From Dicyema japonicum (lineage: Eukaryota > Animalia > Dicyemida): 64,000 nucleotides of DNA. This document shows positions 14,269 to 64,000 of the stretch, in pieces. The stretch lies in the NCBI GenBank assembly GCA_011109175.1, contig RDEW01000028.1:401000-464999 (forward strand), read 5' to 3'. Below the pieces are notes generated by a model. It was not told where the DNA came from, made no database searches, and was given only the letters and a program-made list of their open reading frames with translations. The first letter of the stretch is position 1. Every line of letters starts with the position of its first letter. The translations under genes were made by a program, and so were the position numbers.

Positions 14269-14345
14269 AATGACGTTGTGGTTCACCAAGAGGTGTCATT
14301 TGGTTGTGCCTGTGCCCTACACAGCACACATGAAAAAGAACCACA
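14269..14345 (+). ncRNA. candidate HDV-like double-pseudoknot RNA in the LINE 5' UTR
   Basis: P1 AAUGAC/GUCAUU, P2 UGUGGUUC/GAACCACA, P3 ACC/GGU, P4 hairpin 14305-14328, joiner CAUGAAAAA. The order matches HDV topology; loop L3 (AAGA) is non-canonical. Confidence 0.55.
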
Positions 14346-14419
14346 TCATTTCCCTATCGTCTCTCTTCAAGGAGATCTCGATGGCGACCATTGAGCGGGC
14401 ACGAAGCTTTCGCTCCCAA

Positions 14420-14464
14420 GAATCCCTCCTGACATCCGGTGACATTGAACTAAACCCAGGGCCG
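14420..14464 (+). other. 2A-like StopGo (ribosome skipping) peptide
   Basis: ESLLTSGDIELNPGP matches D(V/I)ExNPG|P, immediately upstream of the APE domain. Confidence 0.9.
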
Positions 14465-16849
14465 CAGAATAGACCCATCAGAATCTTACAACTTAACATC
14501 AATGGAATCACCTCGAAACATACCGAATTGGCTGAGTACTTGGTTAAACACCGTATTGACATTGCCCTTCTACAGGAGTCACGTTTGTCTGCCTTCTCCC
14601 AAACACCAAAATTCAAAAACTACTCTTTGCTCCGTTCTGAGCGATCAAATGGATCTCACGGTGGTGGCCTGGTCACCCTCATTCACAACTCCATCCCATT
14701 CACGGATACCACTGACCACACATTGACAGCGGCTTCTGATAAACATATGGAATTGCTATCCATCACCATCAATATTATGTCAACTCCTTACACAATTCTG
14801 AATATCTACATTCCCCCTTCGTCTTGCTGCCAGAAGAGTTACCGACCAAACCTAGAATTCCTTCAACTATACGAAAACATAGTTATTTGCGGCGATCTAA
14901 ACGCTAAAGATCCACTATGGTTCCGAAACCAGAATTCGGACCACAGAGGGAAACAAGTGATCTCTGAACTGGAACACCTAGTGATATTGAATAACCCCCG
15001 CCAACACACGAGATGTGGAACACGCCCTGGGGATCCTAACACGTCTCCCGACCTCTCCATATGCTCAGCTCCCCTTGCAAAATCGATCTACTGGGATGTC
15101 AGATATGACTTACCCTCAGATCATAACCCTATTCTGATCGACATCTTCTTGCATTTCGGACGAACTATGTCGAGGCGAACCTATGTGAACTACAAAAGGG
15201 CGAGATGGATCGACTTCACGGTTGACGTCGAAACGTCGCTGGAAAACTTCTCTGTGAATAATTTTACCTCTCCAGACAAAGCCATTGCACATTTCAACTC
15301 AGCCATCCTTTCGGCGGATAGAAAGCACGTCCCTAAAGGATTCATCCATGATTACAAACTATTTTTCAACAAAGAAATATTGGATCTCATCTGTGAGAGA
15401 AGACGCCTAAAACGTTCCCGAACAACCAACCAGCAACTCCAAGATGAAATTTCTTCCCTAAACAAGAAGATAACCCACCTCATTACGGAGCTCAAAAAGG
15501 AGAAGTGGTCCACTTTCGTCTCTCGATTGAATCCAAAATCAAAACCCCAAAGTTTCTGGAGATTTATCAGAGAAATACAATCAAATCAAACCGAATCGAG
15601 CACAACCCATGGAGGTAGACTTGGAAAGGACAACCAAACGAAAGATTTCCACTGCCAGGCAAATGACTTGATGACTCACTATTGCAAAATGAGTCATATT
15701 CCAATGAATAAAGAAAATCGACCTCATATTACTAAACCCCCAAGGGTAACAAAGGCACGATTCGAAGTATCATAAGTCATGTTCAAAACCTCATTACAAA
15801 CTCAAGAAACTCACCAGCCACGGGACCCGATCGGATCAGCATATTCCACCTAAAGCACCTCGGTCCAAACGGGCTCTTGGCACTTAAAGATATCTACGAA
15901 TTCTCCATCAACAGGTGTTTCATCCCGATGTTATGGAAGAAGTCGAACATTATCCCAATACTCAAGAACAACAAAGCCTCCTCCTTGCCCTCTTCGTTCA
16001 GGCCAATTTCCTTAACATCTGTTGTCTCAAAAATCCTCGAAAGGATCATTCTTAACGAAATCACCCCCTACCTCGACCTCTCCGACTCACAACATGGTTT
16101 CCGTCCTTTACACTCGACCACCACGCACTTACTGACACTAACCCAATACATCTCCAACGGTTTCAACAACTGCAAACCCCCGGAACGAACTGTCTTGGCC
16201 TCTATTGACCTAACTAAAGCTTTCGACAGAATCTCCCGTGTGGTCCTCTGCAACAAGATCTATTCTTCAAATATTCCCTCTGTATGGAAGTCATGGCTCA
16301 CAAATTTCCTCTCGGGAAGACTGGGTCATACGTGTCTATATTCAAATCTATCAAGATATCGACTCCTACCAAACGGTGTTCCCCAGGGATCAGTCCTTTC
16401 ACCCTCACTTTTCAACCTTTACGTCAAAGACATCCCAACAACCCAAAATACGTTACTATTGACATATGCCGATGATCTAGTAATCGCATCCAGGAGTGGC
16501 GATGTTCGACTGGCCACCGAAAAAGTGCAGTACCACCTGAACTTGCTATCCGACTGGATGAACTTAAACTGGATGAGTGTTTCCACCTCGAAGTCATCAG
16601 CTACCCTGTTCACAACCGATCGAAGACAATTCAACCTAAACCCCACACTCTCGTTGGTGGTCGGCATAAGAAGACTTTCTTCCTCAGGTTCCTTCCAAAG
16701 ATTGTAAGTCTGGGGTTAATAAATAAATTAATCTTTTATGGGTGTTGCTTTCAAAATTGGAAACTTATTCACCTCACGATTTATAAGGAATTGCGTTCAA
16801 TAAGCGAACTCCTCTATCGCTTATCTCTTACTCATCACGGTAAACAACT

Positions 16850-22455: not shown

Positions 22456-22995
22456 CCAACATGGTTTCAGGAAAGACCGATCTACATCAACACACCTCAC
22501 CTCTTTGAACCAGTTCATTATTGAAGGCTTTTCTGCAAAACCACATCTGAAATCTGTTTTATGCTGTCTCGACCTATAAAAGGCCTTCGATTCTGTATCC
22601 AGAAAAATCCTCACTCAAAAAATATTTAGACTATCCATCAACTCGAACATAAAATTATGGCTTTCAAATTTCCTCAGCGGAAGGAGAGGGCGTGTCTTGT
22701 CTTCTGCCTTATTCAACTTATACCTTTCCGACATTCCCAACCCAGTTATGGAAGACTCGGTAATTCTCGCTTATGCTTATGACCTACTCATCATTTCACG
22801 TGATAAAGACCTCACGAATGCTTCAAAAAAGTACAAGAACTCTTGCTTCAAATTCAAACTTGGATACATCAAAACCGGATGAACATTTCTCACGAAAAAT
22901 CCACCACGCTATTTACCTCGGATAAAATGCTCGAAGATGTACCGTGGATCTATTCCTGGACAACGAATAAATCCCTTTTACAAAGAACCATACTT
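22456..22995 (+). mobile_element. LINE RT fragment related to 14231-16731
   Basis: QHGFR...ST, KAFDSVSR, WLSNFLSGR, LFNLYLSDIP, LAYAYDL. Confidence 0.75.
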
Positions 22996-22997
22996 GT

Positions 22998-23190
22998 AGT
23001 TGTGGAAACCTCCCAGTGGAGTGAGGGAGAGCAAATGATCCTCTTTCGTGCCAGCCAGACACTGGGCGTCACCTAGACAGGTGGATCATATGACGTTGCT
23101 TTAATAAGAAGAGAACGGAGGAACAGACAAGCAAACATAAACTTCAACCAATTAGCCACGCAGCACCACATAGTGCCATGTGACGTATTA
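22998..23190 (-). mobile_element. short retroposon family 2 (pseudoknot-bearing), 5' half; tail at about 22405-22455
   Basis: Close match to 23985-24138; the tail taaccccggatacacc is separated from it by a LINE fragment. Confidence 0.8.
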
Positions 23191-23384: not shown

Positions 23385-24185
23385 TTAATTAAATTTTTTA
23401 ACCCCGAAATCACGAAAAATAGGATATGAGTTATCGTCTAATTAAGTGATCTAGGTGTCCATACCAGTCCTTTTCTTGCGGTTAGTTTTGGAGTCCTGGA
23501 TTAATCTCCACAACGGGGAAGGTTTCTTCTCGTATCTCGGGCAGGCGTCCATATATAGTTTGACGTCTGGCCCGAGGGGATGGTCAGGGGACTTTGCAAT
23601 CTTGAGGAAGTCCTGGTGGTGTTCTATAAGGTATTCCATGATTGAAAGACAATTAGTCTTCTCCGTAGTAACGATGTGGACGTCTTTTTTTCGACGATCT
23701 CTACAATATTCTGAGACATCCGTTTTGTAAGACTTCCAGCTTGCTCTGTGTCCATAGTGATAGCGGGGCAATACATGCAGCACAGGCGTACTCAATACTC
23801 GGTATAACAAATTGTATGTATATAAGCTCTAACGATGGGCGAGAATTAATTTATTTATTAACCCCGGATACACCGTGAAAGTAGTTAAAGTAAGCAACTA
23901 ATGAAGTGTATCCAGTTTCCACTTCTACAGAAACAGAGTCCATCCGGAATCAGCATAAAAGGTAAGACGTCCATTACATGCAGTTGTGGAAACCCTCCAG
24001 TGGAGTGGGGAAAAGCAAATGATCCTTTTTCGTGCCGGCCTGGCACTGGGCGTCACCTAGACAGGTGGATCACATGACGCCACTCTAATAGGAAGAGAGA
24101 GGAGGAACAGACAAGCAAGCAGACCACATGGCGCCACGCGATGGGCGAGAAGATATTTGGGAGTACGTAAAAGCCTTGAGAATTC
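23385..24185 (-). mobile_element. LINE 3' fragment interrupted by a family-2 retroposon
   Basis: Removing the insert restores LELIYIQFVIPSIEYACAA; ends in cggggttaaaaaatttaattaa. Confidence 0.75.
23846..24138 (-). mobile_element. complete short retroposon family 2 (293 bp)
   Basis: 13-bp TSD cgatgggcgagaa at 23833-23845 and 24139-24151; 5' hairpin head, pseudoknot 24020-24081, 3' tail ggggttaataaataaattaa. Confidence 0.9.
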
Positions 24186-45004: not shown

Positions 45005-45250
45005 GAATTTAATACAAGCAAGTTCACCCAGAGTTAATGGAAAGGAAAGAACTCATCAATCCTTCCAGTTGTGGAAACCCCTTCCATGAAGTGGAGGAAA
45101 ATAAATGACCTTTTTTCATGCCATTCCGGTATTGAGCATCATCTGAGACAAATAGATGATTTAATACCACTTTTTCATAACAAGTGAAGACAAGGAACGA
45201 AAGAAATTAATAGAAACCTTCGACCATGTAACCAGTAAAGGGAATCAATG
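45005..45250 (-). mobile_element. short retroposon family 2, diverged copy
   Basis: cagttgtggaaaccc...aaatgaccttttttcatgcc matches 23985-24040. Confidence 0.7.
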
Positions 45251-52544: not shown

Positions 52545-52835
52545 CTAGGCGGCTACATAGTTTAAGATTTCTTTTACTTTCTTCTGTTACACATTTCCCT
52601 TGTTCTCCTGGAGTGCTTTATGTGATCCATCTGTATCAGGTACGAAAAATGATCATTTGCTCTCCTATACTTTACTGGAGGGATTCCTTCAACTGCATTC
52701 CTTCAACTGACTGAACGTTTACTTGTGTGATATTGGAAGTACTTTTTGATTCTGTGCAAACTGGATACATTTAATTTTAAACTTAATTTCTTTCTCGCCG
52801 TATACGCGATTTATAAATTATTCAAATTAAATTTG
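52545..52835 (+). mobile_element. short retroposon family 2, diverged copy
   Basis: atgtgatcca...acgaaaaatgatcatttgc...actggaggg...aactggatacat matches the reverse complement of 23846-24138. Confidence 0.75.
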
Positions 52836-53121: not shown

Positions 53122-53650
53122 GTAGCCGCGTGGTGCCACGTGGCTACCTGATTGAAGATTTCTTTTCTTCCCTTTGGTGGCGTCATTGGAGTCATCTTAC
53201 TCAGGAGACGCCCGAAGCTTGGCCGGAATTCAAAAGGACCCCATCTATTAATTCCACCGGGAGACAACTTCCCTGGCGACAAGTTCTGGAATCGACCTCA
53301 GCTCCTCTGACGAAAACCCTCTGGATCACTTGGCTTGGGTGAGGGTTCTGCTGGACCGCGTCAGGATCAAGGAATTAGTTTTGTTTTACCTTTGTCTTTG
53401 AATAATTTAAGTAATTTAACAATAACTTTAGTGCTGAACTAAGGAAGCTGAATAAATATTCAGTCCTTGAAGATCGTTTCCGCTTTGCCTTCAATGCATC
53501 TGAAATTGTTAGGAGAACGGGTAAAGGAACCGCCTGCGAAATTTTGAATGTGATTGCGTCAGCAATCAAGGATCGTTTTCACAGCGCTTTGGTATAACCA
53601 TCATCCGCGGTAATGGTCACTGTCAGTCGGAACATGATTTTTAATAACGT
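53122..53650 (+). mobile_element. short retroposon family 3: hairpin and pseudoknot head, unique middle, CRE-derived tail
   Basis: Head hairpin 53122-53147, pseudoknot 53179-53243, tail translating AELRKLNKYSVLEDRFRF...IIRGNG. Confidence 0.75.
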
Positions 53651-61560: not shown

Positions 61561-61899
61561 TAAAGCAACCCTTTTGGATATAATTTGGAATTATATCTGG
61601 CGCCACCAGAGATAGTGAATTATATGACGAACGCTAACAATTCAAACTCCCTGGAGTCAAAAGGGAAACGAAGGAACAGAAGAAACAAACAAAAAATCTT
61701 CAATTCAAGTATCCCATAGCACTACACTAACATTGGCGCCACGTGGCATAGTTGCAATGAAAAAAATAATGTTTAATTGGTTCCCTTCTAGATCAGACGC
61801 CCTCCGGAGTGGGATTTCTGTCGCAATTATGAAAGGTGGAATTTTTTTTGACTCAACTGGCGACTTGAGCTCAAGGAGGATAAATATGCAGGACAAGCT

Positions 61900-62610: not shown

Positions 62611-64000
62611 CCAATTCACACTGTCATAGAAGTAGAGACCTTTCAACATCACAGTCCATCTAGATACAGAGAAAAAGGAAGAAAACATCTTATTCTCGCA
62701 GTTATGAAACCCCTCCAGTGGAGTAGAAGAGTGAAGTGATCCTTTTCCGTGTCACGGTGGCATTGTGCGCTACTCTCACGGTTAAGAATTCCCAGTTTAT
62801 CTCTTAGTCTCCTTCTCATCGTCGTTCGTAAATCCAGTTCATCTCTGTATCCATTAAGAATACTCTCTGCTGTTTTCATAATCGTAGCAGTCTGTATATA
62901 GGCTTTCATAGGATAATCCAGCTTCAAGACTACTAAATGGTGTTTATAGTAATTGCTGACGATTTCATCCCAAGTCAAAACTACTAGGAATATATACACT
63001 TTTGTTGTGTCTACACGTATTTCTACAATTTTTTTTGAATTTTTTTTCGGATCAACGAGAAGGGTTATGGCTAAGACAAAAGATTGGAATAGCCATACTC
63101 CGAGGGAACTCGTTCGCAATCCACGCAGCAGGCTTCCTCAACTGACATTTGTTTAATTGTTAAAAAAAATTTTTGTTAAAAAAAATTAAAGATTTTATTA
63201 AATCAAATAAAAAAGGACAAAACATCTCTACAAATTTGTTAAAAATTACTAATTGTATTTTTTGATTTTTATTCCAAACAGATGGCTTGTGATACTCTTG
63301 TCAAGAGGATTCTGCACTCCCTCCCCGAATTCTCTATTGACCATGATGTCGGTCATACACGTGAGGCCTGTAGCCGTACCGATTCCACAAGATACAATTT
63401 ATTATTGTTTTTAAATTTGTTAAAATATAGTCAATAAATGAAACAATTTAAATATCATGCTATCGATGTAAACGCCTAGTGCTCCGCCAAACACGTGGAA
63501 GCACGCTCCGTGTAGGACAGTATCGTTGTTCTGGGAATGTCCGTATATAAGGGCTAGTGTAAAATTTAAGCATATTGACGTCTTCTGACCACATTGAACG
63601 CTCATAACCGCGGCCTGTCAATTTGACGCCATTGACAGAAATCTAGTGCTTTTCTCTGATGGTCTCATTTTAATGACGGGGGAAAAGCGTCTATGTTAAT
63701 GTCGACTATATAACAACCCTTTGTTTGGGTCGCATGTTGACATGCCTTTTCTACACAGTACCACATATCTCATCTAAAAAGGCTGATTCTGTGTATCATA
63801 AGAATCTAGAGTTTCTTCTCACGATGGCAATAGATCAACCAAGAAGCTACTGAATCTCACCTAGGTCGTGGCGTTTGAGTGTAGCTAGACGTCCTAGCTT
63901 TTTGAGAAAATTAAGCGATTTCCCGCATATTCCTCCAATTGTTTCAACCACAACGCCCTGGAAAGTGAATCAGTTAGAACCGCATCGTATTTCCCCTTGG

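Follow-up and report, generated by a model that had tools for sequence, protein, structure and literature searches.

The window analysed here, a stretch of 64,000 nucleotides from the genome of Dicyema japonicum (contig RDEW01000028.1, positions 401,000 to 464,999), carries on its minus strand a short retroposon with an internal, hepatitis delta virus (HDV)-shaped RNA pseudoknot. We refer to its family, a short interspersed element (SINE), as SINE-A. The 67.5-Mb genome assembly is divided among 377 scaffolds; its GC content is 36.7%, its introns are very short, and 49% of it consists of repeats that were not described in the genome paper (PMC6736024).

The SINE-A copy occupies positions 23847-24138. 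It is 292 bp long and lies flush between two perfect 13-bp target-site duplications (TSDs) of the sequence ttctcgcccatcg, the 5' TSD at 24139-24151 and the 3' TSD at 23834-23846 (24151-24139 and 23846-23834 as read on the minus strand). A preliminary description, made from the sequence alone, had recognized a retroposon bounded by this duplication and had given its length as 293 bp. In a family alignment of 30 copies, the window copy lacks approximately 27-33 nt within the 5' module; it also starts 3 nt inside the commonest family start.

Read 5' to 3' on the minus strand, the copy begins with a 5'-terminal signature (24123-24138) that corresponds to a second, partial 5' end of a long interspersed element (LINE), namely the 5' strands of P1-AUG-P2, with 16 of 19 nt identical to the start of the internal motif. 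The 3' arm of the terminal hairpin that follows in full-length copies is deleted here. Next come a CU-rich spacer (24089-24122), conserved in SINE-A, in a second family termed SINE-B and in older relatives, and the leader TTAGAGT (24082-24088); its homologue in LINE lineages C, E, and G is TTAGCGT, a leader with which the elements of these lineages begin. The pseudoknot itself lies at 24020-24081, within a stretch (23979-24083) homologous to the first ~105 nt of a lineage D-type LINE 5' end. The copy closes with a 20-nt 3' tail (23847-23866).

This tail is shared with a LINE on the plus strand of the window (14270-16731), an internally deleted member of lineage A (LINE-A) that encodes a 2A peptide and is a candidate helper; its own pseudoknot occupies 14270-14344. 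As described before, the last 20 nt of the two elements are the same (16712-16731 in the LINE), and a BLAST comparison of the two 3' ends gives 21/22 matches.

The pseudoknot and its covariation

In the window copy, the pseudoknot runs from element nt 58 (24081) to nt 119 (24020), and all of its helix pairs are Watson-Crick, in agreement with the pairings first proposed. P1 (GGCGUC/GACGCC, 24081-24076 with 24054-24049) has 6 bp and is followed by J1/2, the trinucleotide AUG (24075-24073). P2 pairs UGAUCC with GGAUCA (24072-24067 with 24025-24020), and P3 forms 3 bp, ACC/GGU (24066-24064 with 24057-24055), around the 6-nt loop UGUCUA. After J1/4 (CAG) comes the 4-bp P4 (UGCC/GGCA, 24045-24042 with 24036-24033), which is connected to the 3' strand of P2 by the A-rich J4/2, CGAAAAA (24032-24026). 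The helix order, P1, P2, P3, P3', P1', P4, P2', is that of an HDV-like nested double pseudoknot. Since P2 crosses P1, ordinary folding cannot show P2; a nested-only fold still gives P1/P3 and P4.

A search of the genome with the 33-nt core of the SINE-A motif returned 751 matches at up to 3 mismatches, compared with 0 for a reversed-pattern control, which puts this abundant family at 751 copies or more. With a loose helix descriptor, hundreds of chance matches were obtained; a strict descriptor recovered only SINE-A and LINE-A, with 1 control match. Alignment with MAFFT across all lineages misplaced P1' where L3 (the loop of P3) or P4 differ in length, and for this reason the covariance model that we built contains just P1 and P3, with P2 scored as a helix outside the model. 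The model aligned 24 matches, representing 23 distinct sequences; LINE-A and LINE-H were not captured and were parsed separately.

Pairing cells are complementary in 90.4% of cases, compared with 84.1% after shuffling, a level reached by 0 of 500 shuffles, and with 29-51% after displacement of the partners by 1-3 columns. Although P2 is absent from the alignment model, 90.4% of its cells pair too, and both strands vary at three of its six pairs (GC 12/AU 7; UA 14/CG 2; UA 12/CG 8). Two-sided changes affect four of the six pairs of P1, and P4 shows compensatory changes as well. Because the sequences are related, the independent events are fewer than the cells; counted by lineage, there are at least three separate events in P2 and many in P1. 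P1 and P2 both covary among the aligned copies. Across lineages the best-conserved parts are the AUG, P2, and the A-run.

Further evidence comes from the comparison of the SINEs with the LINEs. LINE-A has the same helices in the same order, with P1 AUGAC/GUCAU, P2 UGGUUC/GAACCA, and a P4 that also differs from that of SINE-A. The earlier observation that the stem order matches while P1, P2, and P4 differ in sequence and still pair is thus confirmed as covariation. The step from the LINE P2 to the SINE P2 (UGAUCC/GGAUCA) amounts to two double changes, one of which creates a UGA directly after the AUG. Because this change makes a stop codon, the P2 changes must have arisen once the lineage was non-coding, and the pairing is accordingly under selection in the SINE itself. 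In SINE-B, P2 shows a further swap from U-A to G-C relative to SINE-A; P1 and P4 are kept, while L3 and J4/2 differ. The comparative sequence data indicate that the pseudoknot fold is real and under selection.

The pseudoknot in 2A-LINEs and in two SINE families

LINE-A has an open reading frame from nt 1, followed by the 2A peptide (DIELNPGP) and then by the apurinic/apyrimidinic-type endonuclease (APE) and reverse transcriptase (RT) regions, which match the Pfam families Exo_endo_phos_2 and RVT_1. Approximately 24 near-identical copies all begin at ATGACG. The window copy retains open frames of 501 and 276 amino acids, and its RT part runs directly into the tail. Elsewhere, members of this lineage are 98-100% identical, with frames that stay open over 929-1108 amino acids. 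From these sequences, the lineage looks recently active.

Several variants were seen among the LINE-A copies. About half of them (including loci L036, L038, and L039) carry UGGCUC in place of UGGUUC in P2 with the partner still GAACCA, giving a C-A mismatch. The variant changes Phe to Leu in the leader peptide, and lineage F has the same P2 combination. At two loci (L053 and L054, G000:C246:490402-493776 and C317:149514-152888), the first 57 nt of LINE-A, from P1 to P4, are swapped for the same unrelated sequence; either the locus has been duplicated or the 5' end is chimeric.

A protein search with the LINE endonuclease region yielded 2787 candidates, many at 35-54% identity. We read approximately 400 nt upstream of 20 of these 2787, and all but one locus could be sorted into lineages C to H. 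The pseudoknot architecture is common to LINE lineages A, C, D, E, F, G, and H, at least seven in all, and to SINE-B. The shared plan opens with P1 (5-7 bp) and then AUG or GAUG, continues with a UGGYUC/GARCCA-type P2, NCC...GGN, P1', a variable P4, and an A-run, and closes with P2'. The P1 sequences of the LINEs diverge yet pair, as in AAUUUUC/GAAAAUU, AAUGUC/GGCAUU, and GGCGUU/AACGCC. Lineage F (L092, L094, and L098) represents a natural minimal fold, in which P1, P2, and P3 are kept and the joiner is UGA followed by the A-run.

In lineages A, C, E, and H, the AUG of J1/2 (in LINE-A, the AUG at the start of P1) is followed by a stop-free frame up to the 2A motif. This stop-free frame indicates that the LINE pseudoknot is translated and that the peptide it encodes is shed by 2A. 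For L1Tc, as well as for other metazoan 2A-LINEs, shedding of an N-terminal peptide by 2A has been discussed (PMC3708506).

SINE-A shows no coding capacity, as the AUG in its J1/2 is immediately followed by a UGA stop. When full-length SINE-A was compared with LINE-D by local alignment and BLAST, nt 95-198 proved ~71% identical to the 5' region of lineage D, which identifies SINE-A as a LINE derivative. A DNA search of the genome with SINE-A gave 1880 first-look candidates, the best 40 of which are 95-96% alike; by this measure the SINE-A copies are young. Other copies have TSDs of 8-13 bp and staggered 5' ends. These TSDs, together with the variable 5' truncation and the shared tail, indicate copying by target-primed reverse transcription with LINE enzymes, and SINE-A would be mobilized by the LINE reverse transcriptase through this tail. 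The earlier view of SINE-A as a non-autonomous partner of the 2A-LINE is supported.

LINE-A is inserted into, or adjoins, a SINE-A copy at L041:1290-1500 and L035:2320-2395, and in the first of these the SINE body reaches to within a few bases of the first ATG of the LINE. At another locus (L100, G000:C323:2057700-2058110, minus strand), a GGGGTTATTAAATAAAT-type retroposon 3' end directly abuts the 5' end of a LINE-G. This type of 3' end is 77% identical to the SINE-A tail region over 65 nt, a longer span than the 20 nt shared with LINE-A. The lineage that serves as the true SINE-A helper may be one other than LINE-A.

The 5' boundary of the SINE-A family was located from the loose ends of contigs from four sequencing runs of a single DNA sample of this genome. 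Its main point is the first C of CCGCGUGGCGCC, and a minor boundary 3 nt further in coincides with the start of the window copy. Full-length, TSD-bounded copies start 89-93 nt upstream of the first G of the motif. Because the boundary lies ~90 nt upstream of the motif, the pseudoknot is internal, and the proposal that the element is headed by the structured RNA does not hold: the motif starts at nt 58 in the window copy and at about nt 90 in full-length copies, preceded by a conserved module of ~90 nt.

The first ~19 nt of this module also resemble the 5' terminus of several LINE lineages. In full-length SINE-A, the first nucleotides pair with the following arm to form a 12-bp terminal hairpin (-21.2 kcal/mol, z -3.3), and in SINE-B the corresponding position is taken by a hairpin of 11 bp (-23.4 kcal/mol, z -5.9). 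After the hairpin, both families share UUGAAGNUUUC, then the CU-rich spacer, and then the leader. SINE-A thus has a LINE 5' signature twice, in part at the terminus and in full further inside. SINE-B is represented by 634 first-look candidates at ~80% identity, of which 13 copies were aligned for the majority motif; its body and tail differ from those of SINE-A.

We also considered the CU-rich spacer with TATTAG as an intron. This was dropped, as the deletion in the window copy has no GT-AG ends and no spliced copies were seen. The base upstream of the CCGCG start is a G in 12 of 21 local full-length SINE-A copies, and the loose-end consensus reads TTAG. These bases could be further templated bases, a start-site motif common to the LINE leader, or, for the G, a cap-added base.

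Genomic footprint of cleavage and competing readings

A ribozyme that processes the 5' end leaves copies that start at its cleavage site, and we therefore used copy starts at G1, the first base of P1, as a footprint, as has been done for R2 and Perere-3 (PMC3774820, PMC8501958). Where the motif start matches a 20-mer exactly, the element's own T stands at position -1 in 420 copies and another base in 4; of these 4, 3 are point mutants and 1 is a true start at G1. At position -2, 23 copies differ. The nine least transition-like were examined and are all continuous elements, while the other 14 carry an A, which, taken from the letter only, is consistent with a G-to-A point change like that of copy L014. 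At most 1 of the 424 SINE-A copies starts at G1. About a quarter of the copies in the 30-copy alignment are truncated somewhere within the 90 nt upstream of the motif, and a single start at G1 in 424 is the rate predicted by random 5' truncation.

The LINEs provide a second test. In lineages C, E, and G, P1 is preceded by a conserved leader that is 7 nt long or longer. Cleavage would have removed it, so that its presence speaks against cutting at P1. A longer P1 absorbing the 7-nt leader was sought by eye in these three lineages, and none was found.

In HDV-like ribozymes, L3 is part of the catalytic core (PMC4908430), and the catalytic C and a few positions of L3 are held rigidly (PMC3774820, PMC4870747); R2 ribozymes rigidly conserve the catalytic C and four other positions (PMC3774820). 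The Dicyema elements show a different pattern. In a SINE-A subfamily, A2, a U replaces the candidate catalytic C, which is the sole C of J4/2, with 88 exact 25-mers compared with 231 for the C form. Two transversion markers go together with the U (Fisher p 0.0012 and 0.0016), so that scattered CpG decay is not the cause. LINE-F lacks P4, and its joiner from P1' to P2' contains no C; depending on the lineage, 5 to 9 nt separate the J4/2 C from P2'. L3 is 4-24 nt long with no base common to the lineages, and the conserved active-site bases of L3 were not encountered. P1.1 could form in the window copy, between the UG of L3 and the CA after P1', although two-base matches of this kind easily arise by chance; SINE-B, LINE-E, and LINE-G offer no equivalent pair. 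An Rfam search of the whole window at the gathering score gave no relevant match. At E up to 10, the motif and a full-length copy matched none of the HDV, CPEB3, or drz models; as these are narrow and ignore pseudoknots, the test is a weak one.

Self-cleavage, which the preliminary description had considered possible, is not supported by these sequences in SINE-A: starts at G1 are nearly absent, subfamily A2 has U for C, and sister lineages do without the conserved core bases of L3 and J4/2.

Based on these results, we read SINE-A as a derivative of a 2A-LINE, resembling short internally deleted elements (SIDEs) and short interspersed degenerate retroposons (SIDERs), and consider it somewhat more probable than not that the LINE 5' pseudoknot is kept in it as an uncut or slowly cutting cis-signal that does not define the 5' end. 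In this arrangement, a terminal hairpin that repeats the first ~20 nt of a 2A-LINE is followed by the CU-rich spacer, a complete LINE 5' end with its pseudoknot, a body of ~170 nt, and the 20-nt LINE tail. In the LINEs, the start codon sits in J1/2 of the pseudoknot, with 2A discarding the knot-encoded peptide. In the SINE, the pseudoknot would imitate the 5' end of the LINE RNA as an uncleaved, or at most slowly cleaving, signal, and the RNA that is copied would be uncut at the base of P1. The most likely role of the structure, by analogy, is the docking of a LINE-encoded protein, or of the ribosome translating where that protein emerges. The 5' hairpin module would supply the true 5' end and probably an internal promoter.

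Several points weigh against this reading. LINE-A, LINE-F, and LINE-H begin exactly at P1, like ribozyme-processed elements. The window copy and several lineages carry C-G-A-A-A-A before P2', resembling C75-G76-A77-A78 of HDV. The lack of cleavage in vivo is inferred from DNA copies only, and cleaved RNAs might exist that fail as templates. In addition, the promoter role of the 5' module is a conjecture, and binding of a protein or ribosome to the pseudoknot is putative, drawn from analogy.

More tentatively, and with clearly less confidence, we propose that the fold is a non-catalytic H-type pseudoknot with an A-rich strand, built around the start codon and recruiting the 2A-LINE protein or the ribosome, which two SINE families copy in order to parasitize the LINEs. 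If the fold is non-catalytic, it may be an HDV-shaped structure with a job other than cutting, or an independent invention of the same topology.

Among the alternatives, an active HDV-like ribozyme in SINE-A survives best, although we regard it as unlikely. It would cut 5' of G1 and release body and tail from the upstream RNA, slowly or attenuated by the P1/P2 look-alike upstream, so that uncut, promoter-bearing RNA remains to be copied. HDV-like ribozymes have a P1 of ~6-7 bp, P1' directly after P3', a P3 of 3 bp, a spacer that separates P1 from P2, and a variable P4 (PMC3774820, PMC4908430), and the window copy fits these and the R2 ranges with its helix order, a P1 of 6 bp, a P3 of 3 bp, a J1/2 of 3 nt, and a P4 of 4 bp. 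Its J4/2 opens with CGAA as in HDV, its P1.1 could form, and the starts of LINE-A, LINE-F, and LINE-H at P1, including the 24 LINE-A copies at ATGACG, would follow from cleavage. L1Tc joins an HDV-like ribozyme to 2A, and flanking sequence, upstream or downstream, attenuates such ribozymes (PMC4035085). Published L1Tc-type ribozymes have C at +1 (PMC4035085), so a first base other than G is no obstacle. These likenesses are countered by the copy starts, by the leaders of lineages C, E, and G, by the amplification of A2 with U for C, by LINE-F with neither P4 nor the C, by the variable L3 and C-to-P2' distance, and by the lack of any Rfam match even at E = 10.

We consider it improbable that the SINE pseudoknot is a functionless relic of the LINE 5' end that has not yet decayed. 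The module is clearly LINE-derived and the copies are young, as such a relic would be. Yet P2 acquired two compensatory double substitutions after the frame was closed, P4 shows compensatory changes, a U-A pair is swapped for G-C between SINE-A and SINE-B, and both families keep all four helices despite different L3, J4/2, and bodies.

Least probable is a conventional SINE transcribed by RNA polymerase III, with a tRNA-, 5S-, or 7SL-derived head and promoter boxes in the 5' module. Two sites there bear a loose resemblance to such boxes, TGGCGCC-ATGTGG to an A box and GGTTAAT to the beginning of a B box, but these sites are only ~12 nt apart, and a T4 run lies at nt 43-46 with more within the body. 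ARAGORN detects no tRNA in four full-length copies, in line with the earlier statement that this is not a tRNA-type SINE, the sole Rfam match at E up to 10 is a chance one to a small nucleolar RNA, and the module is better explained as a copy of a LINE 5' end with a hairpin arm.

Relatives in the window and comparison with known systems

The window contains further elements related to SINE-A. On the minus strand, an older, 3'-truncated copy lies at 22991-23137 (BLAST 86% identity; covariance-model match of 52 bits at 23030-23099), and an isolated 52-nt fragment at 22409-22460 matches the SINE-A 3' end with 88% identity. An old relative occupies 45041-45170; its family is 70-78% alike and too decayed for a usable family reading. 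A relative that has lost P1'-P4 lies at 52622-52698 and a partial one at 62698-62769. At 61564-61633 on the minus strand, a related SINE carries a decayed pseudoknot module with a LINE-C-type P4 (covariance-model match of 23.7 bits). Further copies had been listed before, and they are indeed relatives; 22991-23137 belongs to the same family, but 61564-61633 belongs to a related family with a different LINE-type head. Lastly, in the SINE-B region 53122-53650, a SINE-B copy on the plus strand at 53122-53330 has the same design of 5' hairpin, spacer, and pseudoknot (the latter at 53177-53246) on a different body.

HDV-like folds at the 5' ends of LINEs are usually read as ribozymes that process the 5' end. 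In Dicyema, selection maintains the same topology in no fewer than seven LINE lineages and in two SINE families. To judge from the SINE copies, the leader-keeping LINE lineages, the C-less subfamily, and LINE-F, however, this selection is not for cutting at P1. This makes testable whether HDV-shaped retrotransposon pseudoknots have a second, non-catalytic role, for example the recruitment of a protein or ribosome coupled to 2A. Our results also document the main repeat family, previously undescribed, of a genome with 49% repeats (PMC6736024). The suggestion that such an element was new applies to this organism and to this arrangement; as a kind of element it has precedents in L1Tc/NARTc/SIDER with Pr77 and in the SIDEs of R2, and the earlier comparison with R2 SIDEs and SIDERs is apt.

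The trypanosomatid L1Tc/NARTc/SIDER system likewise combines an autonomous LINE, whose first ~77 nt adopt an HDV-like fold and whose protein has an N-terminal 2A, with short non-autonomous derivatives that keep the 5' hallmark, Pr77. Promoter and ribozyme functions are united in Pr77, and in SIDER2 the signature is present twice in tandem (PMC4035085, PMC3383444). The two tandem Pr77 hallmarks of SIDER2 in Leishmania and Trypanosoma (PMC4035085) are comparable to the partial and complete LINE 5' ends of SINE-A. In contrast, the L1Tc ribozyme (L1TcRz) lies at nt +1, cuts at +1, and is active in vitro, whereas the complete fold of SINE-A lies ~90 nt inside, and its first signature consists only of 5' strands locked in a hairpin. 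The host of SINE-A is a metazoan (a dicyemid), the sequences are unrelated, and the copies do not start at the predicted cut site.

Perere-3 of flatworms, with twister variants at its 5' end, is similar in that retroposons of spiralian parasites carry small ribozyme folds, with the TSD serving as a cleavage footprint (PMC8501958). Its ribozyme belongs to another class, and its TSD abuts the cleavage site, while the TSDs in Dicyema lie 57 nt (window copy) to ~90 nt upstream of the predicted site. The Sm-alpha SINE of flatworms carries a hammerhead ribozyme.

The SIDEs of R2 derive from the LINE by internal deletion, with the 5' ribozyme region and the protein-binding 3' end retained, and the R2 ribozymes, with a P1 of 6-7 bp, a P2 of at least 5 bp, and a variable P4, match the geometry of the Dicyema fold (PMC3414825, PMC3774820). 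R2 differs in being site-specific in 28S rDNA and in cleaving at or upstream of the 5' terminus of the element. Its L3, P1.1, and P3 bases are strongly conserved, whereas in Dicyema L3 is the least conserved part and P2 and the A-run are the most conserved. R2 RNA also has a conserved 5' pseudoknot that binds the R2 protein rather than catalysing a reaction. This is the functional analogy that we favour for the Dicyema elements: a conserved knot near the 5' end of a LINE RNA that would bind the protein of the element.

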